Of a stretch of 64,000 nt of DNA, positions 1,307 to 56,546 are shown piece by piece. Numbering within the stretch: position 1 is the stretch's first letter; each line of letters begins with the position of its first letter. Source of the stretch: Podarcis tiliguerta (Eukaryota); NCBI GenBank assembly GCA_965153285.1, contig OZ229115.1; one strand, given 5' to 3'. Both the position numbers and the translations under genes were made by a program. The notes under the pieces were generated by a model, which searched no databases, had not been told where the DNA came from, and saw only the letters and a list, made by a program, of their open reading frames with translations.

Positions 1307-4300
1307 CTGTCTTTTAACATGTATAGGGGTATTCAGGGTCAAAAGAACAAGAAGAAAAAGAAAGAGAAAATAAGCAGAATCTACCCAGTTGCTTTCACTG
1401 ATTGGTCCCTCCTCATGCAGAGATGATGTTGGGTTTGCTTCATCTGTTGTTTCCTTGGTTATATTAATGGGAAGCTCACTAAAACTTACTAGCCTCTCCT
1501 GCTGCCTTCCATTTTCTTTCTGGTGTTCTAGCTCAAATTTTGCCATTGACTCTTCCAAGGTATTTGGCAACAAAATACCTTCTTTGGTTGCTGATCTCTC
1601 TTGCTCTCTCTTTACCATTAGGCTGCTGGGGAATGGAGGTGTCAGGGTAAATCTGATTAAATTTTTTTGGAAAATTCACATGGTACTGAAAAAAAAAATC
1701 ACATGGTACTGAAATTGTATCACTGCATGTGCCAGCTGAGCTCTCATTCCAGAGAAGGCCCTTTCCTCATTATGCACATTTCAGCTGATTGGGAAATGAA
1801 GAAAACTGCCTGTACATAATATATTAGGTATAGACAGGCACATATATAGACAGGATAATCCTTCAGGTACATTGTCCCATGAAGAACAAGCCTAGAAACA
1901 GGCTTGGAGGCACAGGCACTGCAGTTGTTGAAACACTGGTATAATACATAATCCCAGTTAGCAATCCAGCAGCCACATTTTAAATTATTTGAGGTTCTGA
2001 ATTGCCACCATTTTGCATATCGGGAAGCTACTTTATACAACAGTTTCCCTAAAGGTATGCTCTCAGCAAGCTAAATATATGGTTTCACATTTGACAGTGT
2101 ATGCTGATATATCAGTAAGATGCTATGTGTTATATGTGGCCCTTAAGTGTTACTATTTTTTAAAAATACATTTTCTTGATTTTCAATTATAGTGAAACAA
2201 ACCATAATAGAAATATATATATCCTCAAGTACAACAAATAGTAGCATTTTACTATTTGAACACCCATATACCCATATCTCAGATCAGCAACCCAGTCAGG
2301 TCATTCATAGGAAAAACAAAATTTGCACTGTAGTTCAGATGATACAGCATGGAGTGTTTCCTCTAAAAGGTAAAGGTACCCCTGCCCGTACGGGCCAGTC
2401 TTGACAGACTCTAGGGTTGTGCGCTCATCTCACTCTAGAGGCCAGGAGCCAGCGCTGTCCGCAGACACTTCCGGGTCATGTGGCCAGCATGACAAGCTGC
2501 ATCTGGCGAGCCAGCGCAGCACACAGAACGCCGTTTACCTTCCCGCTGGTAAGCGGTCCCTATTTATCTACTTGCACCCAGGGGTGCTTTCAAACCGCTA
2601 GGTTGGCAGGCGCTGGGACCGAACGACGGGAGCGCACCCCGCCGCAGGGATTTGAACCGCCGACCATGCGATCGGCAAGTCCTAGGCGCTGAGGTTTTAC
2701 CCACAGCGCCACCCACGTCCCGTGTTTCCTCTACATGGAGATAATTTCTGTGTAGTTAATGTATAAGGTAGACCTTAGAAATGTAAAAGAAACAGGAAAA
2801 GGGGAGTTTGATATTAAGAAAAAAATTACCTTTCTTGTGAACAACATTTCCTATGAACCATTTTACTTGCCACGACTACTACAGGCATTATGCATGCTAA
2901 AAAAGAAAAAGAACACAAGAAAAAAGGCTCATGAAAGTCCAAGAAAACTGATGTACAATTAAAAACAGCCATTTTGGAAATTTTATCCAGTGTTACCTGA
3001 GGCATAAAGAACAGTACTTCATTATTGAATACTGTTAACAACAATGTGACATTTGGTGATCACTAGACTATTAGTGGCAAAGATTGGTGAGAGGCAGGAC
3101 TTTTATGTGAATCATCCTACCAATGTTAACTCTAAGAAAAATTAATGGGTCATTAATTCATCACTCAGCAGATTTGCTTGCAGAATACTTACAAATCCAG
3201 TCTTCATTGAGCAATTGTTCTGATTTGTTTTTGGAGAAGTTTTGCAAGAATGATCATTTATCCTGATTTGCTTGCGGGGTGTTTAAATGTCTTCCCACTA
3301 GTCATCCATGTATCACACACCTACCTTTCAATGCATTTCCCAGTTACTTTCCAAATAAAAGTCTGATTGTTTTTTAAAGTGTATTTGTTGAGCCGTTTAA
3401 TCCATGTTAACTGCACAAACATACAGTTCCAGTGTGCAGCTGCAGTATTCTGCAAAATCTAGAGTCTAAAGGCATACAACCAGTGCTATTTCTCTAGGAA
3501 GAGAAGTGCCAGAACTCACCATGAGCACCTCCCTTGTTCTCTTAGAATGGCCATGGCACCCACCTGAGAGGTGCCAGGACTGAGTTCTGGTGAGTTCTGG
3601 CTGGGGGAAAAGCCCTCTACACAACTTTATTTGTTCCTGGGGTGTGTGTGTGCAAAATACTAATTTTCTCTCTAAGCAGTTTAAAACTGTAACTCAAAAA
3701 GAAACAAAACAAAACCTACAAGTTACTTGCAGGTTTGTGTTTAGATAATGATGACCAAAGATTTGAGCACTGGTGAAAAACTTCTGAAATGTGGAGGACT
3801 GTGAACACAGCTGGTGATAGTTAAGCATAGGCTTATATCTCTCTTATAAAATAAACTTTAAAATGTGTATTTCTGGCTGGAGAGTGCCACACTTTCTATT
3901 TTGCTATTGTGAAAAAATCTATGAACTGGTATAAAACCTTGGCATGCAAACATTTATAATGAATCTTTTTATTTTCCCCATTCATATTCAATAAATTACA
4001 TACCAGCTATAAGCAATCTGAGGAAAATACCTAGAAAAGAGGAGAGGAAAGACTAATTAGTGACAGGTTACTTATTTAGACTTAGCCACATCAGAAATGA
4101 ATTATAAAAGGAAGTACTGGAGCTCAATATAGATCTCATATCACAAGAGGTGGATTTGAGCACAAGAGCACTCACCCTTCCTGTGGTTTCCAGCATCTGA
4201 TATTCATTTTTTAAAAATAAATTTCATTAGAGTTTATAAAGAGAAATACAAAACCTGATCTCAAATATCTTTTTTGTCCAACATTAAGATAAAAGCATGA

Positions 4301-7300
4301 TAAAAAAGTAAAAAGATAGAGAAATAAGAAAAAATAAATAGAAAAGAGTTTTCAATAGGAAATAGAAAAGATAAAGTTCAGAGATTAAAGAACTTCCCAT
4401 TCTTCATCTGTCCGCTATATATAAACAATAATCACTTCATCTATTCCAATACAACACCAAACAAAACCGCTTTCTATCAACAAACCTTATCTTCAACCCC
4501 CCCATCCATTATTTATTTTTATTTTTCATGCAAAAAGTCTATGAGAGCTTTCCAGTATTTAGTAAATGTCAACAATGACCTTTATCTGATTAAACATGTC
4601 AATTTTGCCATCTCAGCTGGGTCCATTAATTTAGGGTTGCCATATTTCAGAAAGTGACCCAAAAGTTGTTTCTGAAGGCCAAATCCCGGCAATCTGGGAA
4701 ATTCTGGATATATGGCACCCCTAGTTAAATTTTAAAAACCATTCTTCCATTGTTGATAATGATTAATCTTTCCATCTTTGTGCATATAATAGTCTCGCCA
4801 CCAGTAGACCTCTCCTCCATAAATTTGTCTAATCCACTTTTAAAACTATTCAAGTTGGTGGCCATCACCGCCTAGGGGAGTGAATTTCATAGTTTAACTA
4901 AACACTGTGTAAAGAAGTAGGTATTTTCTATTATCTGTCCTGAATCCTCAAGCATTCAGCCTAAGAGTTCTAGGGTTATGAGAGAAATGAGAAAAAACTT
5001 CTCTCTATCCAATTTCTCCATGTCAATTTTTATAAAATTCTACCATGTTGTCTCTTACTTGCCTTCACTCTAAATTAAAAAGTCCCAAAATGTTGCAACC
5101 TTACTTCATAAGGGAGTCGCTCCTTCCACTTGATCATTTTGGTTGCCTTCTTCTGAACCTTTTCCAATTCTACAATATTTTTTGAAGTAAGGTGACTGGA
5201 ACTGTACACAGTATGCCAAATGTGGTTGCACCAAATATTTCTATGTTGCCATTATGATCCTGGTAGTTTTATTTTCAATTCCTTTCCTAATGCTTCCTAG
5301 AATGGAATTAGCCTTTTTTATGGCTGCCACATACTGGGTCCACATCTTCACTGAGCTATTTACTATGACCCCAAGGTTTTGCTCCAGTGACCTCCAGTTC
5401 AGACCCCAAGAGCATATAGGTGAGATTTTTTTTGTCCCAGCAGGCATGACTTTATACTTGTTTACATTGAATTGCATTTGCCATTTTACCACCCAGTTGC
5501 TCAGTTTGAAGAGGTCCTGTTGAAGCTCTTCGCAATCTCTCTTTGTTTTAACAACCCTGAAAAAATTAGTATCACTAGCAAACCTGGTTACCTCACTGCT
5601 CCGTCGTAATGCTAGACCGTTTATGAAGAAGTTTAAAAGCACTGGTTACAATACTGGTCCTTGGGAGACTCTGCGTTTTACCTCTCTCACAGTATGGTTC
5701 CCTCTCTAGAAACCTAATGGATAACCAGTATTGGTTAGAGTGCTGATGTTGTGAGCCTTATTTCCTTATGCTCAGTTAGTATATATGCATAATTAAAAGT
5801 CTCCAGTGACTTTCATTCCAATGAAACCAAACCTGACGTAAGCACTGGCACCCCCAACATCTCTTGGCATTTTCACAAATATTATACTTACTCAGTTTAC
5901 AAACTGGAATATAAGGTGACCATTTACTCCCACCAATGTAAGTAATTGTAGATGGCCCGAACAAAGTATACCCAGCATTACATTGAATAGAAATTTCATC
6001 TCCAGGGGTATAGTATTGTTTCACCCCTTTCGTTATTCTTCCATTATAGATATAGAATTCAGAAGTGTCTGGTGATGTTTTTGCTGAAAACACAAATAAC
6101 TGTTATAAATGATAAAGCAATGCTTTGTTTCTTTGTACAGTGGTACCTTGGTTCTCAAACTTCATCCATTCTGGAAGTCTGTTCCAAAACCAAAGCGTTC
6201 CAAAACAAAAAAAAAAATCATACTTGTGCAACTTGTGCAAGATGCATAATGTTCTACACCAAAAGGTTAAAAAACCTCTCTGATGTATATAGATTTGGAA
6301 TATACTAAGGGTTTAAGCATAAGAGTGTATACAAATATCTTCAAATTTAATAGGAGAGCTGACCTTAGCCTGTCTTGTTCATGATGTAAAATTATTCAAA
6401 CAGGATCCACTCTAGCAGGCACCCTCCTCTATGCTCTCTCCCTTCTCACAGATGTATTCAGACTGTTTTCCCAAAATGGTAGCTTTTAGCAGGGGAAGGA
6501 AGAAGCTTAATTGTTTCCAAGATGACACCAGCCATAATGGCATGTAGGCTTTTGGATCAGCTACTCCAGAAAACATGCTCATAATGCATGGATTTTGCAG
6601 ATTTTCTCACTACTGCATGAGGCAAAAGTTGCAAGGGTAGCTTTGGAAGGTCCCAACATTTTCACCCCTCTAAATTAAAGGTAAAGGACCCCTGACAGTT
6701 AAGTCCAGTCGTGAACGACTCTGGGGTTGCAGAGCTCATCTCGCTTTACTGGCTGAGGGAGCAGACGTTTGTCCACAGACAGTTTTTCACGCTCGTGTGG
6801 CCAGCATAACTAAACCGCTTCTGGCAAAACCAGAGCAGTACACAGAAATATCGTTTACCTTCCTGCTGGAGTGGTAACTATTTATCTACTTGCACTTTGA
6901 TGTGCTTTCGAACTGCTAGGTTGGCAGGAGTTGGGACCGAGCAACGGGAGCTCACCCCATCATGGGGATTCGATCTGCCGACCGTCTGATCGGCAAGCCC
7001 TAGGCTCAGTGAATCCCAAATTTGCTGTCTGAGGCAAGGGACTGAATCTGTTTCATCATCAGAGTGGCCCTCTTGCCTCTTCCTCCTGGGAGGAAGGCCA
7101 TGTTTGAAAAGCTGAGTGTGACGTGTCTTATTAGAAACTTGGGATAGCCAACTTTAAAGCAATATGATTGCACCTTATCTTAACTTCACCCAAAAACCTC
7201 AACAAGGTAGTTATCTAGTAATATACACAGCACTCTGCTTTCCAACATGACCTAAAAAGCCATTGTTCTAGTCCCATTCCAGTCCTGCATTATGAGGAAT

Positions 7301-10300
7301 GAGAGGATTCAGAGACTATAGGTATTTGCCCCAATACGATTATACAAGGGGAAGGGATGTAGCTCACTGCTCAAATCCCAAAGGAAATGTTTACTTGATA
7401 GCAGACTAGGTACTGCATCACTTAAAATAATTATGCTCATTTTATCTACTTTTTTTTTTTTTAAGAACAGCCTCACAGGGCTGTAGATGGGGGTGAAGAT
7501 TGACCATCAGTGATTTACAATAATGGGCAACATCTATCTTGGGTATGGAGCAACTGAGGAAGGAACATATTTGTGTGCTTCTCAAACTGGTTCTATACAT
7601 ACCCAAACACAGTAGTATAGAAGGATCCCACTGATTGTAGCCTTGGCATTGCACACTCATCTTTGTGGTTTCATCAATGAAAGAGTAGTTTTGATTGCAG
7701 TACACATCAATGACATCTCCAACATTGTATTCAGATAGCAATGGATGTACATATCCTTTGGACACTACTGGGGCACCACAAATATGTGGAGTAACTGTAA
7801 CAAGAACAATAAAACTGCAGAAGATAAAAATTATTGTCTGTATAATATTAGCCTTGCTTTTATATAAGTTTGTGGCAAGAGTCAAGTTGTAATCAGAATA
7901 TTATGTATCTGGATTTTTGAGCGCAAAACACAGTTTACTACTGATTCCTTCATGGCCAAACCAAGTAACCTTGTTCCATAGTACGCAAGATAATTTTTCT
8001 GAAAATTCTCTTAAGTGTTTTTTGAGCAGTCATATATGGAGCAGACTTATAAAATAACCACTTGATCAGTTGTGATGATGAGTAAGCAAAGCTCACATGC
8101 AATCAGGTGAAGAAGCGTGATCTTTTCAGACACAAATGAATAACCTACATCTGTGTGACCGCTGAGGCTACATATACTCTCTTTTAAGGTAGACATTTTA
8201 ATAGATTCATGTGCAAGGCTGATTTCAGAATGTGCTCATACTAGGCATGCACATGGGAAGGTTCCAGAACTTTGAAAGAAGGAAACATTCTCATGTCATC
8301 CTCCTTGGCTGTCTAATCCATATTGGCTGGAATTCAAACTGGTGCTAAGGAGTTCACTCTGTCAGCACATTTCTGCTTGCCTGATAATGATAATTTCTGC
8401 TTGCCTGATGAAATTATCTCCCCTCTCCCCACCCCTGTCGCCCCCTGTCCAGGACTCCGACCACTGCACACAAAGCCCCAACATTGCCCTGCTTGAAACC
8501 CGTCCAGGTAATCAGCAGTGACACCAGCACCAGGAGGGCAGTTCCACTCAGTCACATGAACTGCTACTGTCTGTAACCTCACTGACTGAACTTGCAGCTT
8601 TGTTCAGTGACCTTATCTGGAGTTCAAAGGAAATGAAGTAAAACTAATGCAAATATGAAGATTAAAGGTAAATACTGGCTAACAACAGAGAAGATGTAAG
8701 GAAAATAGGTAGAAGGATAAGAGCTGCTGGCTGAAAGTAGAAGTAATGTGGGAGTGAAGATAGCTGACTGCTTCACTACCAGGCAGGAGTGAAAAACTGG
8801 TGCTAGGAGCATCCCACTTCCCTGAAACCTTTTCACTCCTGCCTTGTCCTGGACAAGGGTTATCACCCAACCCAGTGCTTGAATGACACCAGAAATAAAT
8901 GTGTTGAATAAATATTTTTGATTTTGGGCTGCCTCTCCTTCTGCATTAGTGCACCATTTTTACAATACAGTAGTGCCCCGCAAGACGAATGCCTCGGAAG
9001 ACGAACAACTCGCAAGACGAAAGAGTTTTCCATTTTCTGAGGTGCTTCACAAGACGGATTTCCCTATGGGCTTGCTTCACAAGACAAAACGTCTTGCACC
9101 TTTTTTTTTAAACCGCCAATGCATTCCTATGGGAAACCGTCAATACACATTGGTGCTTTGCAAGACGAAAAAACTCGTAGAACGAATTAATTTCGTCTTG
9201 TGGGGCACCACTGTAGTGTTCTCTGAACTTGGCCAAGATCCCTACATGAGACATAATAGAGAAGAATGTCAATATACACACTTCAGCTTAAAACTCTACA
9301 TGATACATTATTTACTCTTTTATAACACAGCATTTCTCCAAGTTTAAACAGCTTCTAATTGTTGAATCATAAAACATAAATGTAAATCCTGTGATTTTTT
9401 TCAAAGTCTTACTTTTTTTGCAGGATGGCACTTTAGGGACCCAAGTACCGTTCTTCTCACAGAGAATGTAATGATTTCCAATCATGAAGTATCCAGTTTT
9501 ACATTCAAGTGTAACACTGTTGCCATAAGTATAGGAATCTCTTAATCCACTTAATTCTATTCCATTTTGAACTCGTGGATTTTCACACATAACCACTGAA
9601 AGTAAGATTAAAAAGCAAAACTCCTTAAAAAATTGAATCTGTGCATTTCTATTTCCTTAAAGATGGGATATTTTCTGATGAAGCTTATTTTTAAAAATAC
9701 TCTCCTGTTTTCCTGTTTGAATAATACTTTTGTAGTGTCTGTGCAGTGAAAATTAGTGGTTGTGAAAATTAGTCCATCTCCTGCCAGGGATCCAGATTAT
9801 TTCCCCCTGTAATTAGCACTTGCACAGCTGAAAAAATACATATTCCCAGCAATCAAACAGTTATAGGGAAAACGAGAAATGTCAATTAATTCTGCTTATG
9901 TGATTGCCGTTGACACCTAACTAGCTAGCATCTCTTTGAATCAGGAGTAATGAGAGAGATACATTGGTGGGCAGCAGGTGAACAGCAATTCCAATGCCCT
10001 ATTAAGAATGTGCATTCTGTTTCCCTCCACCTCTGGTCTACTTGTATATTTGACAATAAACAAATCATCAATGAAAGAAAAACTGCTATAAAAATGACCT
10101 GTGCATTTGGGGGGTTTCCCTCTCCACAGTGCTTTACCATCATTAGCAACAATATCACAAAAAATGGAAGGTGTTCCAATAAGCAAGAAAGTATCATTGC
10201 AATGGTATTGTATCACTATTCCAGTCCTGTTGTGAGATCCACCAAGAATGTCTGGAGGGACTGCACAGGAAATTTATTTTTAAAAATGAACAAGTTAGCA

Positions 10301-13300
10301 AATAAATGAAACTATTACCAGACAACATAGAAAAATCCAAAATATTGTTGTTTAAAGCAACTATTGTTGCTTTAAACACATTAACATTTCTTTTTAAACC
10401 ATACAAATAATTACAATAAAAAACAACACAGCCCCAGACTTTTTATTAAAAGCAGTCAGTTCCCAAAAAGTATTCACCTGCCAAGACAACAAGGAGGGAG
10501 CCAGTCTAGTTTCCCTACAGAAGCAGTTCTGAAGCCTGGGAGCATCCACCAAGAAGCCCCTCGCCTGCATCCCTACCAAGCATGCCTGTGAGGGTGGCAG
10601 GACTGAGAAAGGGCCTCCCCATAAAATTTCAAAACCAGGCGTATTTATATGAGGAAATAAGGTCTTTCAGATAGCTTGGACTTAAGCTGTATAGGGCTTT
10701 ATATGTCATAATCAGCACTATTAATTCTTCCTGGAAACAGAGCAGTAGCCATGCAGCTGTTGTGACAGGGAGTTGAATGCTCTCTATAACCAACCCTGAT
10801 CAACAATCTGGCTGCAGCTCTTTGAGCCAGTTGGAAGTTTCTGAGCACTTTTCAAAGACAGCCCCACGTGGAACATGTTTCGGTAATCCAAATGGGATAT
10901 AACTAAGGTATGTGTCACTGTAGACAAAACAGGCATCTCAAGGAATGGGAGCAACTTACTAGATTCCACAAATAAATTGTGGAATTTTGTGTTCCACACC
11001 AAATGGGAACAACCATAATAAAACAGACTCAAAATTGGCAGCGTTGGGTAATGACCAGAAATTGTGATTCTTTAATAGGTTACATGTGGAGTCATGGATT
11101 TGGGAATATTTGGGAACACAGACTACAGAGCTTCAAGAATGAGGCAGTAAACTTCACTCCATTTTCTCATTTATTTTCCTAGAATGAATTTCCTGGTTCA
11201 GATGTTAATAGGGAACTCTGGCTTATACCAGCCAGGATTGTCACATAGAAGCCTGAAAAATTAGAGTTAGCTTTTAGAAATAACCAGGTTTTTTTAATTA
11301 ATAATTAAGCAGCACATACATTTACATGGCTCTTCCAACTCTGTCCAGGAACCATCACGACAGTAAGTGACGGTGCTTTTACCAGGCAATCTTACAGCAC
11401 CATCTTTGCATTGGTATATTACAGCAAAGCCAATAAGTTCTTCATACACCTCAGAAAATGTAAAGTTTGGTAAGTCATCCATGTTGCAGGCCTCTCCACA
11501 CACTTTAAAAAGACAATAGTTAAAAATGTTACAGAAAACATTGGAACTGAAAATGTTATTCACCACTTTGCTATATTTAATATTTTGTCATGTCAACAAC
11601 AGAACAAATATTGGGGGGGTAATAACTAACAGAAATGAACATGTAACACTTCATAATACCCATATGAAAGTGTTTCAAAATGAGTGCATGAACTACTGTG
11701 TATTAGCAGACACCTTCAGTTTAAACCTCAGTCTCCTTGGACCTCCTCCTGTGTGAACTCCAGCAAAACTAGCACTGATGCTCCCTTATACAATACACAT
11801 TTTCTTCATTTCAAATGAAGAGTTCCTGCTGGAATGTCCCCCAAAGGAGAAGGGCAAAGCAGTCCTAATAGCGGGGAGGAGGAGACATGTGCTGGTGCTA
11901 CCAGGTATGTATATCTGCAATGTGGTAAAACAAACAGCAAAGATTTGGCCATGGACAAGTGAGGCACAGCAAACAAGAGAGAGAAAAAGAGAAGGTCAAA
12001 TATTTAAAGTAAATGAATAGATCATATATGAAAGCAAAAATAAAACCAAAGTCCAAACACAATAAAACTTCCACAAAGTTTTGAACCGAAATGTATCCCA
12101 CCAACCTATTACAAATATAAAACATTTCTGTTTCAACCCATATATGTATGCTGGGAAGTCATGACTAATTACTATTTCCAGCCTCAATGAAACAATGCTA
12201 AACAGATGAGCATGCACTTCTCACATATGTTGCTATACACATTTGATGTAGAAACATCACCATTTACAATGTAGGTCCAAGGCTATAATATCAAAACAGG
12301 GTTCTGTGACCAACAACACAATCCATGTTTACTTTAAAAATAAGCCTCACTCTGTTTCTCTGAAACTTAGTCTAATGTTGCTATGCATAGAATTGTAGTC
12401 CAAGGGAATGTATGGAATATTAGACTGAAAACTAGAAGCCAGCTACATTACATATATCATCCAATCTGAAATTGGATTACTGGACTACTATTGCAAGTAT
12501 TGGTATTGAGATGCAATTCATATCATTTCCACAGAACTTATTTTTTGAATGCACTGATAATCAAACAGACTCCATTCAGATTTAAATAAATAATGAAGAC
12601 ATGGAATATTATTTAGGAATATAATTATATGTGGATTGTAGCAATGCTTCACTGACGAACTGGCATTTCAACATCAAAATAAATAAACAGGATACTGTAG
12701 CTGTGAATGGATACAAAATGAGCAAGGTTAACAAGTACCTTAACCTTAACAAGGCTAGTAATGGGTATAATATTTCCACTATCTGAAGCGTATGGCTCAC
12801 AAAATCACCTGCTGGATATCACCAGCAAAGAGTGTTACTTCACTGTTTTTGAGCTCCCAAAGCTACTGAGCTCCCAAAGCTATTTAGATGGCCACTGAGA
12901 AACCAGAATTGGAAGGGGACTTGTTGTTGTTCAGATGATTTTATATACAACAATATATTTATTTTAAAAAATCAAAGTGGTGTTGCTTAACTCAGCAAAG
13001 CTTTTCTTACACAAGTTTTGCAATCATGCAAAAAATGGTCAACTCCATGTTAAAAGCTACAGGGGTGCCTTGCATACTCGTGACCATTGATGTTCATCAC
13101 ATTTCAACACTGCTTGAGCCTGCAAAGTTTTCAGCCAGTCATAATCTTTCTCTTCTAACCAATATGCATACCTGTAACTTCCTGCTGAAACCCCCTGCCA
13201 CATAGAATCATAGATTGTAGAGTTGGAAGGACCGTGAGGGTCATCTAGTCCAACCCCCTGCACTGCAGGAACCCAACTAGATCATACATGGCAGACAGTT

Positions 13301-14083
13301 GTCCAACCTCTGCTTAAAAGCCTCCAGTTCCACTGTTGAACAGAAACTTATTCCTGATGTTTAGTCGGAATCTCCTTTCTCGTAACTGGAACCCACTGGG
13401 TCGGGTTCTACCCTCTGGATTAGAAGAAAACAAGCTTGCTCCATCTTCCATGTGACAGCCCTTTAGATAGTTGGGGGATGGTTAGCAAATTGGCGAACAT
13501 CAAAGAAATACTTCTTCGGATTGATCCACAGAATAAAGTAGAACAGCCCCACCGCTAATGCACTATTATTGTGTCAATCGCCCTAAAAGACCCCTCTGGG
13601 AGGCACCAAGGTCTTCCCCATGCGTGCTTCCTCGGGAGTAAGAAAGGCCGCCTGGCAGAGAAAGCCCCCGTGCGATGTTGGGCAGGCCAATTGGCTCTGC
13701 CGACGGAGGCAGCTGAGTGGGACGCGGCGGGCGGCGCGCAACGCCTCGCAGCTGAGGAGGACGGACACCTCGGCGCCACCTGGCGGGCTGCGGGGGGACA
13801 TCCGCGTTTACCTCAGGCGCCTCTAAAGACCCGCCCACTCGCGCGCCGCGTTTTGCGAAGCCTCTCTAAGCTCGAGGAGAGAGGGGGGAAGGCGAGCGGG
13901 CGGGAGGCGAAGGGGCAGGTGGCGGGGAGAAAGGGAGACTCAGCGGTCGCTAGAGGCCGCTAGAGGCTCCGTCGTCACTCGCCTGCCTTCCTCGTACTCA
14001 CCCACCAGTCCCTGAGGCAGCAGCAACAGCATCGACAAACCCAAGAGCCGGCGAGTCCGCAGAAGCCCCAACAGCCGCAGCAT
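1259..14083 (-). CDS. Paralog A: multi-exon RCA-family (CD46/CREM-like) sushi-domain type-I membrane protein; ~404 aa if the degenerate 10099-10260 exon is skipped
   Basis: Exons 14002-14083 (signal), 11320-11502, [10099-10260], 9413-9595, 7603-7794, 5892-6083, 4004-4030, 2830-2896, 1385-1625, 1259-1306 join in frame with GT-AG sites; CCP exons are phase 1-1 with the C..C..C..W..C pattern. Confidence 0.88.
1385..1625 (-). CDS. Paralog A cytoplasmic exon (SLMVKREQERSATKEGILLP...SESNW)
   Basis: NAGNAG acceptor CCCCAG|CAG in frame with the phase-2 donor; open frame; homologous to the paralog C tail ([10 protein letters not shown]); GTAGAT donor. Confidence 0.65.
2366..2721 (-). mobile_element. 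Full-length Sauria SINE
   Basis: tRNA-like A/B boxes (TGGCGCTGTGG, GGTTCAAATCC), (ACCTTT)n tail, 12-bp TSD GTGTTTCCTCTA at 2354-2365 and 2722-2733. Confidence 0.92.
2830..2896 (-). CDS. Paralog A TM/juxtamembrane exon (ACIMPVVVVASKMVHRKCCSQE)
   Basis: Polypyrimidine-TAG acceptor, phase-2 GTAATT donor; hydrophobic run then basic stop-transfer residues. Confidence 0.85.
3481..3617. mobile_element. Short non-autonomous DNA transposon (hAT-like MITE); copies at 37686-37820 (inverted) and 45981-46117
   Basis: Three dispersed ~135-bp copies with CAG...CTG-type ends. Confidence 0.6.
4004..4030 (-). CDS. Paralog A 27-nt TM micro-exon (S-IFLRLLIA)
   Basis: CTCTTTTCTAG acceptor, GTATGT donor; conserved at 20225-20251 and 43537-43563. 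Confidence 0.85.
4210..4800 (-). mobile_element. L1/Tx1-like LINE 3' fragment with a nested TAGGGTTGCCA-ended MITE (4632-4723)
   Basis: A-rich 3' tail-like sequence; inverted termini TAGGGTTGCCATAT...ATATGGCACCCCTA. Confidence 0.5.
4805..5690 (-). mobile_element. CR1 LINE fragment (RT C-terminus)
   Basis: ORF 5241-5642: FASDT...LQQDL..L..W...WQMQFNVNK...KKANSILG, typical of CR1 ORF2. Confidence 0.88.
5892..6083 (-). CDS. Paralog A membrane-proximal SCR-like exon with only 2 Cys
   Basis: KTSPD...NGRI...YTPGDEISIQCNAGYTLFG...KWSPYIPVCKL; TTTCAG acceptor, GTAAGT donor, 192 nt. Confidence 0.9.
6676..7010 (-). mobile_element. Sauria SINE, 5'-truncated
   Basis: Colinear similarity to 2366-2721, ACCTTTA tail. 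Confidence 0.85.
7603..7794 (-). CDS. Paralog A CCP exon (TPHICGAPVVSKG...YCNQNYSF...QCQGYNQWDPSILLCL)
   Basis: Four Cys plus Trp, TTACAG acceptor, GTATGT donor, 192 nt. Confidence 0.92.
8968..9213. mobile_element. Tc1/mariner (Tigger-like) MITE
   Basis: TIRs CAGTAGTGCCCCGCAAGACGAA / TTCGTCTTGTGGGGCACCACTG, TA TSD; related copy at 57338-57705. Confidence 0.85.
9413..9595 (-). CDS. Paralog A CCP exon (VMCENPRVQNG...ECKTGYFMIG...CEKNGTWVPKVPSCKK)
   Basis: Canonical sushi consensus, TTCAG acceptor, GTAAGA donor, 183 nt. Confidence 0.92.
10099..10275 (-). pseudogene. Paralog A degenerate CCP exon (equivalent to paralog C 53072-53263)
   Basis: Translates ISCAVPPDILGGSHNRTGIVIQYHC...WRGKPPKCT, but the ancestral acceptor AG reads AT at 10276-10277; the in-frame cryptic acceptor (start 10260) removes Cys1; weak GTCATT donor; internal deletion versus paralogs. 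Confidence 0.75.
10440..10955 (-). mobile_element. L2-type LINE fragment
   Basis: Translates HTLVISHLDY.N...GL...KL, an L2 RT C-terminal motif. Confidence 0.7.
11320..11502 (-). CDS. Paralog A CCP-1 exon (VCGEACNMDDLPNFTF...YQCKDG...YCRDGSWTELEEPCK)
   Basis: TTTTTAAAG acceptor, GTATGT donor, 183 nt, sushi Cys/Trp pattern. Confidence 0.85.
13200..13480 (-). mobile_element. CR1 3' end
   Basis: ATTCTATG terminal repeat on the minus strand plus TTGGACTAGATGACC motif. Confidence 0.8.
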
Positions 14084-14240
14084 AACGCCGAGCTGAGAAA
14101 GCGGCGGCGAAAGCCGAGTACCTCAGCTGCGCATGCGAGGTGGGGAGCGGGGAAGGACGTTGGGAGGGAGCTGCGTGGCCGCAGGGAGGCGCGCGCCGAA
14201 CGCTGCTCCGCTCGTGCTACCGGCATTTCTGCTTGGCGTT
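13555..14240. promoter_or_regulatory. CpG island/promoter spanning paralog A exon 1
   Basis: Abrupt GC- and CpG-rich segment in an AT-rich background; GGGCGG box and CCAATTGG motif. Confidence 0.8.
14002..14083 (-). CDS. Paralog A exon 1, signal peptide MLRLLGLLRTRRLLGLSMLLLLPQGLV-G
   Basis: ATG at 14083, basic then Leu-rich segment, phase-1 donor G|GTGAGT, inside a CpG island. Confidence 0.85.
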
Positions 14241-17200: not shown

Positions 17201-18009
17201 ATCTAAGTTTCCATAGAATCTGAACCAGGCACTTACCTTTACCTGAGTAAATTAGGTTTAAAAGATACTGTAATTTGTGAACTGTCATACTTCCTTGCAT
17301 GTGTGTTTTTACTAAATGACAAGAATAAGGCACTATTAGCAAAAGATTAAAAAAGTAGGTTTTAAAGAAACAATAGGTGGACACATTTTAAAGGAAGAAA
17401 AGTAGATCAAACTGAACAGTGTTTCACTGATACTGTTATTTTATTTTTAAGGTGATTATTGCCCTAGATTCAAAATCTTGCAATTTCAGAAGGGACTATT
17501 GCATAGTATGTGCCTTTGTTGCTTTCTTCATAAAACTACATGTTGTAGTATATACCTGTCAGGAATATTATGCTCAATCAGCAGGAGAAAGGGGCAGTTC
17601 ACACAAAGGTTTACTGTGGGATGCAGCACTATGAGAGCCTACCTGTACAGTTGGTACAGTGGTTTTTGCTGAGCTCCTCAACAGAGTTCTGACTGTCCTG
17701 TAACATGTAAGTAAAGGGCCAAAAAAGGGGAAGGAAAGATGGGTCAAAAGAAGGAGAAGGAAAAGAAAGAGAATAATAAAATGATTCTACCCAGTTGCCT
17801 CCACTGATTGGCTCTTCATGTTGTGAATATTATGTGAAATCTGCCTCATACACTGTCCCTTGGCTCTGTTACTGAAAACTACCCACTGGAGAAGACTGGT
17901 TTGGTTTTCCTCCAGACGTCTGCTTTCTATCTGGTATTCTTGCTCTGTTTCTGCCTCTCCTTTATTTCCTGCTACTGCCCAAGTGACAACATTAGTGACT
18001 TCTGTGACT

Positions 18010-18043
18010 TCATTCATATGCCACGTTGTTCTCTTTTGGTAGC
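18010..18043 (-). CDS. Paralog B short cytoplasmic end (RLPKENNVAYE*)
   Basis: TTCTCCGACAG acceptor homologous to paralog C 40737; frame shifted relative to A and C; exon runs on to a donor at 17790. Confidence 0.55.
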
Positions 18044-33000: not shown

Positions 33001-33707
33001 NNNNNNNNNNNNNNNNNNNNNNNNNNNNNNNNNNNNNNNNNNNNNNNNNNNNNNNNNNNNNNNNNNNNNNNNNNNNNNNNNNNNNNNNNNNNNNNNNNNN
33101 NNNNNNNNNNNNNNNNNNNNNNNNNNNNNNNNNNNNNNNNNNNNACCACAGAATAAAGTAGAACAACCCCACCGCTAATGCACTATTATTGTGTCAATCG
33201 CCCTAAAAGACCCCTCTGGGAGGCACCAAGATCTTCCCCATGCGTGCTTCCTCGGGAGTAAGAAAGGCCGCCTGGCAGAGAAAGCCCCCTTGCGATGTTG
33301 GGCAGCCCAATTGGCTCTGCCGACGGAGGCAGCTGAGTGGGACGCGGCGGGCGGCGAGCAACCGCCTCGCGGATGAGGAGGACGGACACCTCGGCGCCAC
33401 CTGGCGGGCTGCGGGGGGACATCCGCGTTTACCTCAGGCGCCTCTAAAGACCCGCCCACTCGCGCGCCGCGTTTTGCGAAGCCTCTCTAAGCTCGAGGAG
33501 AGAGGGGGGAAGGCGAGCGGGCGGGAGGGGAAGGGACAGGTGGCGGGGAGAAAGGGAGGCTCAGCGGTCGCTAGAGGCCGCTAGAGGCTCCGTCATCACT
33601 CGCCTGCCTTCCTCGTACTCACCCACCAGTCCCTGAGGCAGCAGCAACAGCATCGACATCCCCAAGAACCGGCGGGTCAGCAGAAGCCCCCAGGACGGCC
33701 GTTGCAT
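18010..33707 (-). CDS. Paralog B: multi-exon RCA-family sushi membrane protein; ~315 aa if the stop-containing exon 29448-29645 is skipped (otherwise truncated or a pseudogene)
   Basis: Exons 33623-33707, 30846-31019, 28138-28317, 25285-25476, 23648-23839, 20225-20251, 19248-19311, 18010-18043 splice in frame; exon 1 is separated from the gene body by an N gap. Confidence 0.8.
18459..18751 (+). mobile_element. Solo LTR
   Basis: TG...CA ends, 5-bp TSD AAAGG, TATATAA at 18640, AATAAA at 18691, internal 47-bp tandem duplication. Confidence 0.85.
19248..19311 (-). CDS. Paralog B TM/juxtamembrane exon (ASILPVLILTLKWAYRKCSQS)
   Basis: 64 nt, TTTTAG acceptor, GTAAAA donor. Confidence 0.85.
20225..20251 (-). 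CDS. Paralog B 27-nt TM micro-exon (S-VFLRLLIA)
   Basis: TTTTCTAG acceptor, GTATGT donor; conserved across paralogs. Confidence 0.85.
20464..20968. mobile_element. Tc1/mariner-pogo type MITE; related copy at 49591-49964
   Basis: TIRs CCGTATTTTTCGCCCTATA, TA TSD, GC-rich internal palindromic repeats. Confidence 0.85.
21375..21577 (+). mobile_element. L2-type LINE 3' end
   Basis: Matches the reverse complement of 34700-34910; ends GATGGGCGGGGTATAAATA. Confidence 0.7.
22186..22570 (+). mobile_element. Solo LTR
   Basis: TGTTAGGATA...TATCCCAACA(ACA) ends, 5-bp TSD GGGAC, TATATA at 22277, AATAAA at 22359. Confidence 0.8.
22860..23340 (+). mobile_element. Degenerate PIF/Harbinger transposase fragment
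   Basis: 22961-23083 translates EFYNQKYFYSMVLQEVVNTKGHFMDVNVCVVGRKHG, matching the Harbinger YxNRKxxxSxxLQxVxD...F.DV..G..G..HD motif; further degenerate motif near 23250-23320. Confidence 0.72.
23648..23839 (-). CDS. Paralog B 2-Cys SCR-like exon
   Basis: RTSPDTTELSIRNG...QCDIGYILIG...QWLPNIPTCAL, 192 nt, GT-AG. Confidence 0.9.
24940..25110 (+). mobile_element. MIR/CORE-type SINE fragment; similar copy at ~58110-58330
   Basis: GGTTCAAATCC B-box followed by CATGAAGCT...GGTGACTTTGGGCCA core. Confidence 0.6.
25285..25476 (-). CDS. Paralog B CCP exon (YPENCGAPVMPKG...[16 protein letters not shown])
   Basis: Canonical sushi consensus, 192 nt, GT-AG. Confidence 0.92.
25585..26629. mobile_element. 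Non-autonomous hAT transposon with a long internal palindrome
   Basis: TIRs CAGGCCATCTTAA / TTAAGACGGCCCTG, 8-bp TSD TTTTTGAG (25577-25584 and 26630-26637). Confidence 0.85.
28138..28317 (-). CDS. Paralog B CCP exon (MCANPVVPDG...ECKIGYFLIG...CEENGSWVPEVPSCKK)
   Basis: Canonical sushi consensus, 180 nt, GT-AG. Confidence 0.92.
29448..29645 (-). pseudogene. Paralog B CCP exon with an in-frame TAA
   Basis: ISCAVPPSSLDGSHNGTGTYP*EIVIKYHC...; TAA at 29578-29580 where paralog C has Tyr; weak GTTGAT donor. Confidence 0.82.
29892..30692 (-). mobile_element. RTE-BovB LINE, 5'-truncated
   Basis: ORFs 29910-30242 and 30230-30544 (LQYFGHLMRREDSLEKTLMLGKIEG; ITLPTKVRIVKAMVFPVVMYGSESWT), (CAA)n tail. 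Confidence 0.92.
30846..31019 (-). CDS. Paralog B CCP-1 exon (ETCDVGDLPIFPF...YGCKEG...TCINGSWTPLSDPCH)
   Basis: CCCAG acceptor, GTATGT donor, 174 nt, four Cys plus Trp. Confidence 0.85.
32841..33144. other. Assembly gap (304 N)
   Basis: Run of N. Confidence 1.
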
Positions 33708-33870
33708 AACGCTGAGCGGCGACGGCGAAGAGAAGGCAGGCTCACGACTGCGCTGGCGAGTGGCGTCAAAGCGTTCGGTGAAGAGCCGCCTTGCGGGGAG
33801 CGACGCGCGATGGTCGCTGTTCAGCTCGCGTTCCCTGTTTTTCCCCTTTAGCATTTCCCACCTAGAGTGC
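33150..33870. promoter_or_regulatory. CpG island/promoter spanning paralog B exon 1
   Basis: GC- and CpG-rich segment, near-identical to 13525-14037 over its left part. Confidence 0.8.
33623..33707 (-). CDS. Paralog B exon 1, signal peptide MQRPSWGLLLTRRFLGMSMLLLLPQGLV-G
   Basis: ATG at 33707, G|GTGAGT donor, homologous to 14002-14083. Confidence 0.82.
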
Positions 33871-40540: not shown

Positions 40541-40736
40541 CTAGTACACTGATTTGCTTCTCAAGCTGCGGGGATGGCCCAATTTTCCTTGTACTGCTAT
40601 CCTCTTGGATGTTTCACGTGAAAGGTCATTGCTGAGTAGGTTAGGACTGGCCACTGCTACTTTACTCTTTGGCAGCAAACTAAGTTCTTTGGTAGCTGTT
40701 GTGCTCTGCTGCATCTCTCTGCTCTCTGTTCTTGCC
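40541..40736 (-). CDS. Paralog C cytoplasmic exon ([11 protein letters not shown]...RSKSVY*)
   Basis: CTCTGACAG acceptor in frame; TAG immediately before a GTAGAC donor. Confidence 0.65.
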
Positions 40737-43063
40737 CTGTCAGAGAATGGAAGTATGGTCAACCCACTCTTTTAGCTCACCAGTCTAGGCCTCTCCACCT
40801 CTCTAGGCTCAATGGAGATCTCCACCTATATACTTGTTCCATGTCTCAGGGTCATCTGTATGGAAGTATATCACTACTGTGAGGTGACCAAAACTGCAGC
40901 AAGGTACCAAACAAGGTGCAAAACCTATATCATTCTATATAAATTGGTGGGAATGGATTGGAACTAAAACCAACCCAATCCACCACACCATAATATAAAA
41001 ACCACAATATCGTTGCAGACAGAATACTATTTTTAATTTTAAAAGATGCTGCATTTATCTTTGAAAAGTAGTTACAGAAAATAGGCTTCCTTCTCCCTCA
41101 TGGAAGTGCTTTGTGGATGCACAAGGCCTTCTTTTCACTGTAACCCCCTGCCCATTTATCTAAGAGCAGGTCCCATTGGACTCAATGGGATTTACTTCTG
41201 AGTAGACATGTACAGGATTGCACAGTTAATCACAATAGCCAGTAGATTGTTTTTTCACTATTAGATCTCAAGACCCAGTGATGGGGCTCTGCTGGAGATG
41301 TTAGCATATGGACAGGCAGACATAATGATGTTTCAGGTATCTGGAGACAACAAGCTTTAACAGAAGCCATGAAAGGCTTTAAAATAAGTACTAGCAATTG
41401 AATCTGGAGGTAATGCAGTTTGTGACCACAACACTTAATCCCAGTTAGCAATTTTGCAGCCCCAGATTGAACTAATTGCTGTTTCTGAATTGGCTTAATC
41501 GTAGTCCAATATATAATGCAGTACACAAGTATAAATCTGGAGCATGACCACATGGGTTGGAAAACATGAAATTGTAATCAAAAGGCAAGTATGGCATCCA
41601 GCATGATGTCTCTTTATGTCAAACCTGTATAGAAGGTGGAACCAGTTCAATATCTATTATTAGATCTTGAAAGCTGCGTCCTTTAAGGAATTGATTGTGT
41701 GTATTGTGTCATAAGAAAAGGTTGTGGGCTTCTAGGAAGGCCACAACATGAGACAGTACAGTATGGGATGGTGGGCTTCCCTTAAAGGCACTGGACTGCT
41801 CCCCAGTCATCTTAGATACACAAGGGTAGCATAGGAGAGATGAACTATCTTCCCTTTTTGGGATTTTCCTGTTGTTATTCTGTCTCTCACAGCTACAAAA
41901 AACCTACCATTAAAATTATGGACTGGTCATTTCTTTGTCAGAGGGCAAATGGGAAAATTTAGCAGGGGATCAAATACTTTCCCCCCTCACTGTAACTCCG
42001 AACAGCTTGATTAAGATGTATAGAGCAGAATCAGATATGTTCTGGAAATGTAAAGAAATGGAGGGAACATTTTTTCATATGTGGTGGACATGTAAAAAGG
42101 TAAAATAATATTGGGAGATGATCTACAGTGAGTTGAAAAAAGGTTTAAAATAACTTTCCCCAAAAAGATCGGAGTCCTTCCTGTTGGGAATAGTTCAGAC
42201 AGAAATTCCTAAGTGCCAGAAAAAATTAATGTATGCAACAATGGCAGCTTAAGTTTTGTTAGCCCCAAAATAGAAAGCGACAGAGGTCCCAGGCAAGGAG
42301 GATTGGCAACTTAAGATGTTAGAATACACAGAACTAGCAGGTTTAACACATAGAGTAAGAGAGCAAGAAGAACATGTATTCAAAGAAGAGTGGAAAATAT
42401 TTATTGAGTATATGGAAGTAATTGTATACAGCTGAAAACACTGGCAACATTAAGATAAATTCAACAGTGTAATGAATATTTGAGTGATTTAAGAGTGGAG
42501 AACTGATTAAAATGGTTAAAGTAAAATATGCAGGAATGATAGACAAGCAAAATGAACCATGGAAGGAGGAGGGAAGTCATTGGAGATAAAATAGTATGAA
42601 AAATTTTGTTTTGAGATGTAAAATTGAAAATTCAATAAAAAATTAGAAACAGAAAACAGAAAATAAAAGAGGAGTTTAGTAATAAGAGATGTTTTACCTT
42701 TTTAAGTAAAAATTCTGATAAACCATTTTGGTTCCAACAATCAATACAGGTAATAGGCACCCTAAAAGGGGGAAAAAACACACACAAGAAAAATACACCA
42801 TACTATCGTATTAAAAAAGGCTCATGAGAGGCCAAGAAAACTCATGCATAAATCAAAACCAGTTTTGAAAATGTCCTTCAAATGTTACTCAAAGCATAAT
42901 AATACCTCTTGAATGTTAACAATAAAATGCAATGATTTGTCATTAGGTGATCATAAGTTACTCCAAGACAAAAAAACACCAATCAGTATGATGGAGTAAA
43001 GGTTGGTGATTCACTGCCTACACTGCTATTTAGTACCAGAAATCATTTTAAATTATTACCAGT

Positions 43064-43104
<41 letters not shown>

Positions 43105-46100
43105 CAATGTACTTGTAGATTTTGGACCCAAGGATGAGATTCATCAATTGATGAGCAAATATTTGAGCACCAGTGCTAAACTGATAAAATGTGGAAAATT
43201 TACAAAGCACCAATGGTGTGCACAATGTTCAGAGTCAATTCAACAAAAAGTAAATCCTGTCTAGCAAAGAAAAATATGGGAGAAACTTCTAGGGGCATGA
43301 GCTGATTTTTAATCCATGCTTAATTTTCCCTTTTGAAAACCAGGGGACTTAATTTAATAAGGAGAATTAAGCATGGACTTAACTCTCTCCAAAAAGTGAA
43401 ACTTCAAAATGCTTATCTCTGACCCAGTATTTTTTGCTATTGGTAAAAAGCATCTGAAATTGTACAAAGCACTGGTATTCAAATATGTTTAATACATCTT
43501 CCTGTTTCTCCCATTCATTTTCAATAAATTACATACCAGCTATAAGTAATCTCAGGAAAATACCTAGAAAAGAAGGGGAAATGGTTCTAATAAGCAAACT
43601 TCTCAGAAAAGAACATTGTAAGACTATTTCTCGAAAGTCTACTCATTCAGACTGGCAGTCTCATAAGAAAGCACTGCAGCTCAAGGTGGATTTCATATCA
43701 CAACTGGTTGATATGCTTCGCTTACTGCACGTACTCTCATATATGACTTGGCCATTTTAAACTTTCTCCTATACTAATCTAGAAACCATACAGGTTTAAA
43801 AGAATAATCATTGACTTTATTTGACTCTTTAATTCCAAATCTCTTTTTTCTTTTTTCCCTTTTTGCTAGGGTTAGAATTTCCTTTTACAATACTAAAGCT
43901 GCAAGTCTGATTTTAAAAATAAGTACTTACAAATCCTCACATTTCATGAAAACAGAGCTATACTCACATCCTCAAGCTGCTTAGAGGAAAGGTAGGAAAG
44001 AAATGTAATAATAAAACAATGGTTTTAAACTCATGATGCACCAAAATACCTTAGTCTGTTTTAAGAAGCTGTGTGGAATTGGTTCTAGAAATGTGAAGGG
44101 GATAGCAACAGATACATATAAAATACTTGATTTTTCAGTTTAAACATGGTAGATAAATCACTCTAGGAATCAGATCTCAACGTGAGTATCACAGAGGGTG
44201 AATGGGCACACACCTCTTTTTAAAACTATTCCCACTAAAATTAAAGAATCAACACTGAAACTTATTCATAGATGGCACTGGACTCCAGTATGCCTACATT
44301 ACACTGACAACTCCATTCCACCTGTATATTGGAGAGGTAACCAAATATTGGAGACCTTAATGCATCTTTGGTGTGAGCGCTCAAAGGTACAAGTTTTTGG
44401 TGATTTGTGTTCATGATCATATCTGAACTGCTACACTAGAAGGTTGAAATGAAAGCGGCTCTTAGATCCATAGAATTAAAGACTTGGAAGGGGCCACAAG
44501 GGTCATCTAGTCCAACCCTCTGCAATGCAGGAATCTTTTTGCCCAATGTGGGGCTCAAATCCGCAATCCTGAGATTAAGAGTCTTACAGTATGTTCTACC
44601 AAATGAGCTATCTCACGGGCATAGCTTTGCTTTCTCTTTTTCAAAGGTGAAACAAATATCTGTTATCTAAGTCACTTGTTTGTAATCTTCTGACTACTGT
44701 GCATGTGTAGAAGGACACAGAAGGCTGTTCATTTCGTAAATGGTGTGACAGAGTGTGGCATCTGGCGCTAATGGACAAGATCATACAAAAGTGTTAGCTA
44801 GCTTGAAGGGAAACTACAAACGCCATGCTTGAAACAGATTGGTTTCAGTTTATTTCTTTTACTAGCTCCCAAACAGAAGTGCTCAAACCTACGGTATCTC
44901 ACAGCTCCTTCTGGAGAGGTTCATTGGCCATCTTCTTCAATACATGTTTATATGATGAAAATATACTTGTATGTAATGGGCCATAAGGATTAAAACCAAT
45001 GACTAATTTTGTTTGTTTTGTTTTGTTTTGTTTGCTTTTCAATAAAAAAAAGTATTACAAAAAAGTAAAAAAGCTAGTTGGGCAGGGACGTGATGGGGTA
45101 GGTTCACCTATGAGGGAATGGTGAAAGAAATGTATTCTCCAGTCTCTCAGAATAAACAACCTTCTTCCTAGATCATTATATCAAGTAGTAGAGGAGACTC
45201 TGAAGTGACCACAAAGAGGGCCAAGCTAATCCTTTAAATTTTGATGCACTATTGTGAGATAAACTGTCTATAGATTCTGTACCTCTATGAAAGCATATAT
45301 TTAAAAGAAGGCAGACTCATATCAATGGAAAAATACTTGGCATGTTACATTTTCACAAGGATTAATACTTACTCAGATAACAACGTGGAATATTAGGCAA
45401 CCATTTTTTTCCACCAATGTATTTAATCCTAGATGATCCTTTCAAAGAATAGCCAGCATAGCACTCAATAATAACTTCATCTCCAGGGTAATAGTATTCT
45501 TTTTTCCCTTGTTTTATTATTCCTTTAGGGATATGGAGTTTAGCAATGTCTGGGGATAATCTAACTGAAAGCAAATAATGATCATAAACAATAAAGTAAC
45601 ACAAAAGTCCACATAGAAATAAGATTATAAAATTGTAGGAGAGCTGACCCCCTACCCCTTTTTGTTGCTTAGATAAAAAGCTGCCAAGCAGGCTCCACTC
45701 AAATTGACCCTCTCCTCCACAATTTCTCCCTTCTGTAAGAGCAGGTCTGTCTGTTTCCCCAAAACTAGTATCTGTGAAAAGGGGCAGGAAGGGGCATAAT
45801 TGTTTCCAGGATGGCAACAGAGGTAATTCCATGCAGAGTTCTTAGGGGAGCTACTCCAGAAAAAAATGAACACAATAGACACCTTGCATAAATCTTACAA
45901 ATTTTCTTTCACGACTGCATGAGGCAAAAGTTACAAGGGTGGCTTTTTTTACTCCTTTGTTATGCATCAATATGCTATCTAGTGCTATTTTTCTAGAAAA
46001 AGAGGTGCCAGAACACACCACAAGCACCTTCTTCGTTCTCTTTGAAAGGCAATGGTGCCCACCTGAGAGGTGCTGGAACTGAGTTCTGGTGAGTTCCGGC

Positions 46101-56509: not shown

Positions 56510-56546
<37 letters not shown>

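Follow-up and report, generated by a model that had tools for sequence, protein, structure and literature searches.

Regulators of the CD46 family are usually seen as self-contained cofactors that carry their own short signalling tails. Another group of receptors, to which GPVI, OSCAR and LILRA belong, is coupled to FcR-gamma or CD3-zeta. Within this group CD89 has been reported to bind FcR-gamma through an arginine close to the N-terminal end of its transmembrane (TM) segment, and NKp46 and NKp30 are assumed to do the same (PMC13107469). A correctly placed basic residue is enough for assembly even in a featureless poly-Leu TM segment, and such residues lead to retention in the endoplasmic reticulum, or to degradation, of chains that stay unassembled (PMC13107469). 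Here we describe a 64,000-nucleotide (nt) stretch of DNA from the lizard Podarcis tiliguerta (assembly GCA_965153285.1, contig OZ229115.1; hereafter the window), in which three neighbouring CD46-like genes, paralogs A, B and C, each contain a 27-nt micro-exon coding for the start of the TM segment and for an arginine within it. In a partial literature search we found neither an account of a charge in the TM segment of squamate or avian proteins of the RCA family (regulators of complement activation), nor a sushi-domain receptor coupled to DAP12, FcR-gamma or another adaptor with an immunoreceptor tyrosine-based activation motif (ITAM).

The Transmembrane Micro-Exon and Its Splicing

The initial annotation, which had reported three 27-nt exons encoding S[IV]FLRLLIA, was exact in all its coordinates, and the three genes were found to lie on the minus strand. 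The micro-exons are in phase 1-1 and have the same flanks (ttctag, 27 nt, gtatgt) in paralogs A, B and C. Each of them shares its codons with both neighbours: the serine codon is split between the last base of the 192-nt SCR-like exon and the first two bases of the micro-exon, and the last base of the micro-exon opens the first codon of the 64-67-nt second TM exon, which in all three paralogs supplies the remaining hydrophobic segment and a basic anchor. This continuation reads ACIMPVVVVASKMVHRK in paralog A and ASILPVLILTLKWAYRK in paralog B, and ends in ...KK in paralog C. The micro-exon is the first of two exons coding for the TM helix in three tandem type I membrane proteins. The exons concerned are the following:

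4004-4030, minus strand, TM micro-exon of paralog A, encoding (S)IFLRLLIA(+G) (sequence, AG/GT sites, spliced joints)
4017-4019, minus strand, Arg codon AGA of paralog A
20225-20251, minus strand, TM micro-exon of paralog B, encoding (S)VFLRLLIA (sequence, AG/GT sites)
43537-43563, minus strand, TM micro-exon of paralog C, encoding (S)IFLRLLIA (sequence, AG/GT sites)
2830-2896, minus strand, second TM exon and basic anchor of paralog A, (A)CIMPVVVVASKMVHRKCCSQE (tblastn; joints 4004>2896 and 2830>1625)
19248-19311, minus strand, second TM exon of paralog B, (A)SILPVLILTLKWAYRKCSQS (tblastn)
42698-42761, minus strand, second TM exon of paralog C, first residue (G) (tblastn)
5892-6083, minus strand, membrane-proximal SCR-like (sushi) exon of paralog A, ending ...PVCKL plus one base (Pfam Sushi, 30.8 bits)
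23648-23839, minus strand, SCR-like exon of paralog B (tblastn)
45373-45564, minus strand, SCR-like exon of paralog C (tblastn, Pfam)

Inclusion of the micro-exon in RNA, on which the initial proposal depended, is borne out by spliced joints for paralog A and by public gene models for all three paralogs. The RNA evidence comes from Logan contigs of four RNA-like public runs, representing three related species and at least three studies; these are assembled contigs, not reads, and they were aligned to positions 1300-6200 at a likeness of at least 90%, a range that covers paralog A only. Three minus-strand joints with GT..AG at their borders were identified: 5892>4030 (reported as 4027>5889, ambiguous by 3 bases), 4004>2896 and 2830>1625. 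In the first two, the shorter side measures 24-30 letters, as expected for a 27-nt exon with a joint at either end. Since joints on both of its sides are present in RNA-like contigs, splicing does include the micro-exon of paralog A. Among the differences listed for the relatives, the one inside this micro-exon is synonymous (4016 A>G, TTG>CTG). The RefSeq-type gene models of Podarcis and Zootoca include the micro-exon for A, B and C; it is contained in the orthologous models P0151, P0153, P0198 and P0152 for paralog A, P0156 (with R) and P0225/P0226 (with K) for paralog B, and P0155, P0181 and P0182 for paralog C.

The same contigs reach depths from thousands to about 100,000 over the intronic stretches 2284-2775, 3432-3595 and 6056-6200, where many contig ends and joints are found. 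These stretches are probably high-copy interspersed repeats and the source of the spurious joints 2721>6127-6143.

Selection on the Micro-Exon

Differences among paralogs A, B and C were counted exon by exon with the Nei-Gojobori method. The proportion of nonsynonymous differences (pN) in the micro-exon is 0-0.06 and that of synonymous differences (pS) 0.15-0.45, its changes being CTC/CTG and TTG/CTA/TTA, all synonymous, and a single ATT/GTT (Ile/Val). The highest ratio of nonsynonymous to synonymous rates (dN/dS) of all exons, 1.06-1.54, is found in the adjacent SCR-like exon, whose pN is 0.23-0.27; the two upstream complement-control-protein (CCP) exons show a dN/dS of 0.41-0.94, and codons 1-17 of the second TM exon a pN of 0.27-0.34. 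The earlier statement that the differences within the micro-exon are almost all synonymous, and that its neighbours diverge at many residues, is thus upheld by the counts (pN of 0-0.06 vs 0.23-0.34). Fisher's test on the nonsynonymous and synonymous counts gave p=0.002, a value to be read as rough because the three pairs share branches. Invariant columns make up seven of the eight in the micro-exon, 44% of those in the other exons and 14% of those in the second TM exon. Elsewhere, a window of eight codons with seven invariant columns occurs in 3 of 180 cases, all of them over the Cys3..Trp core of a CCP module. The peptide encoded by the micro-exon, including the basic residue at codon 5, is under purifying selection, and the ectodomain and the rest of the TM segment are near-neutral.

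Gene conversion was considered as a cause of the conservation of the micro-exon and was rejected: the synonymous divergence of the exon is normal, matching that of the neighbouring exons, and conversion therefore fails to explain why the peptide is conserved.

Position of the Charge in the Membrane

For searches and structure predictions, public orthologs were used by their identifiers in place of the spliced proteins of the window. The AlphaFold2 prediction for the paralog A ortholog P0151, made with 22 homologs, has a mean predicted local distance difference test score (pLDDT) of 74, rising to 86-92 in the SCR-like module and where the helix begins. Its last strand ends at residue 279 and a continuous helix runs from I281, so that R284 is the fourth predicted helix residue. 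The helix begins four residues, and the arginine lies seven residues, past the last cysteine; because the SCR-like exon splices directly to the micro-exon, only three residues separate that cysteine from the first hydrophobic residue. Between the SCR-like module and the TM segment there is no Ser/Thr/Pro stalk of the kind that marks CD46 proper. On the cytosolic side, a core of 15 residues is closed off by K21 of the segment, which is likewise basic and conserved.

Hydrophobicity was calculated with approximate values of the central-position scale of Hessa 2005. On this approximate scale, the best 19-residue window of the charged forms holds the R or K at position 4-6 in lacertids, pythons and Crotalus, and its sum ranges from about -1.8 to +0.4 kcal/mol, compared with -5 to -7.5 in uncharged relatives. 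The R/K and a nearby proline leave the TM anchor only marginally hydrophobic. On the approximate scale and the predicted helix, the basic residue falls in the upper half of the TM segment, as it does in receptors that use ITAM adaptors, and it is predicted to lie at the very top, either in one of the first two turns or where the headgroups begin. The initial annotation had placed the arginine in the membrane near the outer leaflet; its position in the helix and in the best window agrees with this, but the placement is borderline and snorkelling is possible.

Distribution and Age of the Charge

A HMMER search with the 63-amino-acid (aa) SCR-like exon was dominated by giant multi-CCP proteins, and P0059, P0146, P0009 and P0057 were the informative ones among the 150 matches listed. 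A second profile word search, whose 8000 candidates were taken up by other sushi proteins, contributed three more proteins. In lacertids, paralog A reads SIFLRLLIA in four species and paralog C reads SIFLR[LV]LIA, and paralog B reads SVFLRLLIA in P. lilfordi and in the window, and SVFLKLLIA in P. raffonei and Zootoca. The amphisbaenian Rhineura floridana (P0009) carries SFFIRILIV. Snakes of five genera have lysine: SAFLKLLIL in Python and Liasis, SNFIK[LV]VIC in Thamnophis, SIFLKLVIF in Crotalus and NFLKLVIF in Pseudonaja. Uncharged segments are found in a fourth lacertid paralog, D, located outside the window (SFVFVLLIA), in the cordylid Hemicordylus (SFFFMLLIS and VLFILLIT), in Anolis sagrei (NFLLVMLII), in the ‘membrane cofactor protein’ of Falco (SAYIVAIIC) and in Alligator (NVFAIIIIS). 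The public models of Varanus, Candoia and Naja and the Rhineura model P0157 are truncated, which hides their micro-exons.

In these comparisons, what evolution keeps is the charge, R or K, rather than the codon. Because it is absent from the D paralog, Anolis sagrei, Hemicordylus, Falco and Alligator, the TM charge is a trait of a squamate paralog lineage and not of CREM/CD46 proteins in general. The expectation that the arginine would be conserved among orthologs is therefore confirmed in part, for lacertids (R/K), Rhineura (R) and snakes (K), and fails for the uncharged forms just named. A proline lies nine residues past the charge in every charged form except Zootoca A and in no uncharged form; this co-occurrence of R/K and proline may represent one or two evolutionary events, and therefore no statistical claim is made.

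A maximum-likelihood tree was built from the last three modules of 32 sequences with the TM columns excluded, and sequences of unknown state were left out of the count of state changes. In this tree the Rhineura gene with R (Rhineura3) groups with lacertid C (support 83/82) and the gene Rhineura1 with lacertid A+B (99/94), the C group and the A+B group unite (86/91), and Rhineura2 groups with lacertid D (93/93). The snakes form one clade and the backbone is without resolution. The minimum number of changes in charge state is two, and a single clade of all charged forms was not rejected (approximately unbiased test, p=0.335). Since the C and the A/B lineages each pair with a Rhineura gene, an R-bearing TM segment predates the split between lacertids and amphisbaenians, and by that time it already belonged to two gene lineages that existed next to an uncharged lineage.

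Cytoplasmic Tails

1376-1625, minus strand, tail exon of paralog A, SSLMVKREQER...EGPISESNW (tblastn with P0151, joint 2830>1625; lower end approximate)
40544-40747, minus strand, tail exon of paralog C, ending ...RSKSVY (tblastn with P0155; ends approximate)

The tails measure about 99-100 aa in paralog A, 74 aa in C, about 19 aa in B and 10-27 aa in snakes. In a motif scan, the tail exon of paralog A contained no tyrosine, no ITAM and no immunoreceptor tyrosine-based inhibition motif (ITIM), and the scan found neither motif in any of the charged forms. The uncharged D paralog of Podarcis and Lacerta (P0162, P0218, P0223) has a 12-residue tail, PAQSVYAALCSG.

Two models of paralog A orthologs (P0153 and P0202) read past the donor site after ...SNW (1244-1376) into VDSAYFLFLFLLVLL..., a second hydrophobic stretch, and the version of this read-through in the window stops after ...GHCTK. 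The read-through is probably a case of intron retention and not a real second TM segment.

Candidate Functions of the Conserved Charge

By analogy with known receptor complexes, the conserved charge may make an intramembrane polar contact with a partner protein that bears an acidic TM residue, a reading that we favour, tentatively, over the others considered here. If so, the charge in the first helical turn would contact the acidic residue of a membrane partner, paralogs A, B and C would depend on this partner both for signalling and for being stably expressed at the surface, and the uncharged lineage (lacertid D together with the orthologs of Anolis, cordylid, bird and alligator) would consist of self-sufficient anchors. 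Given how deep the charge lies, a dimer of the FcR-gamma/CD3-zeta type would be the first candidate, FcR-gamma specifically being a doubtful choice. That the squamate CD46/CREM-like lineage joins an ITAM adaptor (FcR-gamma, CD3-zeta or DAP12) through its TM Arg/Lys is, in our estimate, unlikely. Were it true, these proteins would be the first activating immunoreceptors with a CCP ectodomain, paired with an uncharged paralog retained since before the lacertid-amphisbaenian split, and they could either sense targets coated with C3b/C4b or be decoys to pathogens exploiting the uncharged regulator. Complement recognition would then be tied to ITAM-type signalling beyond the Ig and lectin receptor families, and reptiles would offer a simple case of paired-receptor evolution. 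The initial proposal of activating receptors is supported in part: it keeps on its side the depth of the charge, the constraint on the micro-exon and its splicing, and has against it the long tails of A and C and the interchange of R and K.

Several observations weigh against an adaptor-coupled role. The identity of the arginine, which is fixed in receptors that pair with gamma or zeta, is not fixed here, as R and K alternate in the B orthologs and K is found in snakes; this alternation speaks against an adaptor because Lys/Arg exchange has been reported to compromise the assembly of the T-cell receptor, CD3 and NKG2D, RDD-type assemblies being sensitive (PMC13107469). The long A and C tails are unlike those of typical short-tailed activating receptors. 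The SVYAAL / SVYATL of the D tail fits the ITIM pattern at only six residues from the membrane, which is unusually close, and it may be there through chance. The taxon sampling includes one Anolis sequence and two cordylid sequences. Moreover, being seven residues from the cysteine of the folded domain, the arginine may lie in the headgroup region and snorkel without any partner, and in two Thamnophis paralogs the best hydrophobic window starts after the lysine and excludes the charge. Finally, annotated public isoforms of the C orthologs (P0185, P0187) and of the D paralog (P0221, P0166) lack precisely the 27-nt exon with the frame kept, which hints at a second role of the exon in switching between anchored and non-anchored products.

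An interfacial, partnerless Arg/Lys that snorkels, and so sets the register, the tilt or the height of the ectodomain or binds anionic lipids in what would be ordinary complement regulators, is quite possible, though we lean against it. Such a role fits a SCR-like module that sits directly on the bilayer, with S-I/V-F-L-R as the interfacial start of the helix and R as its fourth residue, and it fits the interchangeability of R and K, the Thamnophis windows, the long and motif-free tails, and a K21 placed opposite, with the 15-residue core held between two residues able to snorkel. That core is however short for a span of the plasma membrane, basic residues on the outer flank run contrary to the positive-inside rule, and archosaur and other squamate homologs manage without the charge; moreover, snorkelling leaves unexplained both the co-occurring proline and a frozen eight-residue exon next to a freely changing rest of the TM segment. 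Even if the charge were merely interfacial, the genes would still hold a constrained micro-exon that fixes the membrane register of a stalk-less receptor.

A weak anchor combined with an exon switch, in which skipping of the 27-nt exon would yield a non-anchored (secreted or degraded) isoform and thereby a source of soluble regulator, or in which the marginal hydrophobicity would tune intramembrane proteolysis, seems improbable to us. The exon-skipped isoforms mentioned above keep about ten hydrophobic residues, too few for a membrane span, and the in-frame length of the exon, the marginal hydrophobicity sum and the lack of a Ser/Thr/Pro stalk for sheddases are all in keeping with such a switch. 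However, no joint skipping the micro-exon of paralog A was present among 15 of the 39 joints in RNA-like contigs, and the strong amino-acid constraint favours a role for the included peptide. Annotated skipping extends to the D paralog, which has no charge, and therefore leaves the charge itself unexplained. That the genes are decaying copies, with the micro-exon a chance survivor or a product of gene conversion, is disfavoured and in our estimate very improbable. Decay would account for the damage to the second CCP exon of A and B, which the ortholog models leave out, and for an ectodomain dN/dS near 1 (0.4-1.5 over the CCP exons), but the open reading frames are intact in four lacertid species, the RNA is spliced, the pS of the micro-exon resembles that of its neighbours without any indication of conversion, and the constraint pattern is common to lacertids, Rhineura and snakes.

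Gene Content of the Window and Assembly Gap

Self-comparison and tblastn searches with public orthologs identified three collinear minus-strand paralogs in the 64 kb. In each, a signal exon and several CCP exons precede the SCR-like exon, after which come the micro-exon, the second exon of the TM segment and the tail exons:

about 1300-14100, minus strand, gene of paralog A
about 17000-33700, minus strand, gene of paralog B
about 40500 to beyond 62500, minus strand, gene of paralog C
14003-14083, minus strand, signal-peptide exon of paralog A
33624-33707, minus strand, signal-peptide exon of paralog B
30832-31020, minus strand, first CCP exon of paralog B
7604-7795 (A), 25286-25477 (B) and 49236-49427 (C), minus strand, CCP exon 5' of the SCR-like exon (Pfam, tblastn)
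9414-9596 (A; Pfam Sushi, 50.3 bits), 28139-28318 (B) and 51534-51719 (C), minus strand, best-conserved CCP exon (tblastn)
32841-33144, no strand, assembly gap in intron 1 of paralog B, between the signal exon and the first CCP exon

The signal exon of paralog C was not found within the 64-kb window. The closest public proteins, from Podarcis raffonei, P. lilfordi, P. muralis and Zootoca vivipara, are labelled ‘membrane cofactor protein-like’, ‘C4b-binding protein alpha chain-like’ or ‘complement receptor type 1/2-like’, and the genes are already public as predictions of automatic annotation. Paralogs A, B and C belong to the RCA family and are CD46/CREM-like, with 4-8 sushi (CCP) modules in tandem, each encoded by its own phase 1-1 exon with AG/GT sites. 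The three genes of the window form a tandem cluster of CCP genes, and in Podarcis their orthologs map to one chromosome-scale contig each. Type I topology is indicated by the signal exons, a C-terminal TM segment followed by HRK / YRK / KK anchors, and the AlphaFold2 helix at 281-330. Pfam PF00084 scored above its cut-off on four of the five CCP exons of paralog C, and was partial, absent or below the cut-off on CCP1 of C, CCP1 of A and the damaged CCP2 of A.

The SCR-like module is without Cys1 and Cys3 (Y-I-G-G in place of Y-C) and ends in ...C-K/A/Y-L. The membrane-proximal module of the falcon and alligator homologs likewise lacks Cys1 and Cys3, and because of this shared absence the one-disulfide CCP is ancient in sauropsids. 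The second CCP exon of paralog A (about 10090-10273) has a short in-frame loss and a Pfam Sushi score of 17.5 bits, below the cut-off; that of B (29446-29577) is cut by a stop, and that of C (53073-53261) is intact. The public ortholog models that omit this exon are those of A and B. Paralog C exceeds A and B by three CCPs, its C-only CCP-coding exons being located at 58587-58784 and, as a split CCP, at 56682-56795 plus 55839-55937 (region 55839-58784).

The assembly gap touches no exon and the micro-exons are far away from it. Across the gap, the order of exons equals that of paralog A and of the P. lilfordi ortholog P0156; by alignment, the left flank of the gap gave no match to paralog A within the window. 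The micro-exon finding is independent of the continuity of the gap. The promoter and signal-exon blocks of A (13526-14093) and B (33146-33717) are 95.6% identical over 572 nt, compared with 65-80% elsewhere between the two genes, and the near-identical block of B begins exactly at the edge of the gap. These near-identical 5' ends could reflect a recent gene conversion or an assembly problem related to the gap.

Comparison with Known Systems

The genes resemble CD46 (MCP) and avian CREM in their type I topology, in the tandem sushi/CCP modules on phase 1-1 exons, in the tandem RCA-type cluster, in the TM segment followed by a basic anchor, and in their nearest public names, ‘membrane cofactor protein-like’. 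The falcon ‘membrane cofactor protein’ and the alligator homolog share with the lizard proteins a terminal SCR-like module directly before the TM segment, but these archosaur homologs are without the conserved TM R/K plus proline. Human CD46 differs from the lizard genes in having a Ser/Thr/Pro region and a 12-residue juxtamembrane segment (PMC4469999). In addition, the lizard tails are unrelated to CYT-1 and CYT-2, and two of the lizard paralogs are short of one CCP exon.

With the DAP12/DAP10-coupled receptors (KIR2DS, NKG2C, TREM, NKG2D), in which a basic TM residue is the sole assembly determinant, the snake proteins have in common the lysine that is typical of DAP12 partners (PMC13107469). 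In those receptors, however, the Lys/Arg is central in the TM segment, whereas the lizard charge is at position 4-6 of about 20. A closer likeness in position is offered by the FcR-gamma/CD3-zeta ‘RDD’ receptors (CD89, NKp46, NKp30), which have a single basic residue in the first one or two turns of the TM segment, a small residue four positions past the charge (R-L-L-I-A in the lizard) and uncharged paralogs. They differ in their Ig ectodomains and their location in the leukocyte receptor complex, compared with the sushi ectodomain and RCA-type cluster of the lizard genes, which tolerate R/K exchange and, in paralogs A and C, encode long tails.

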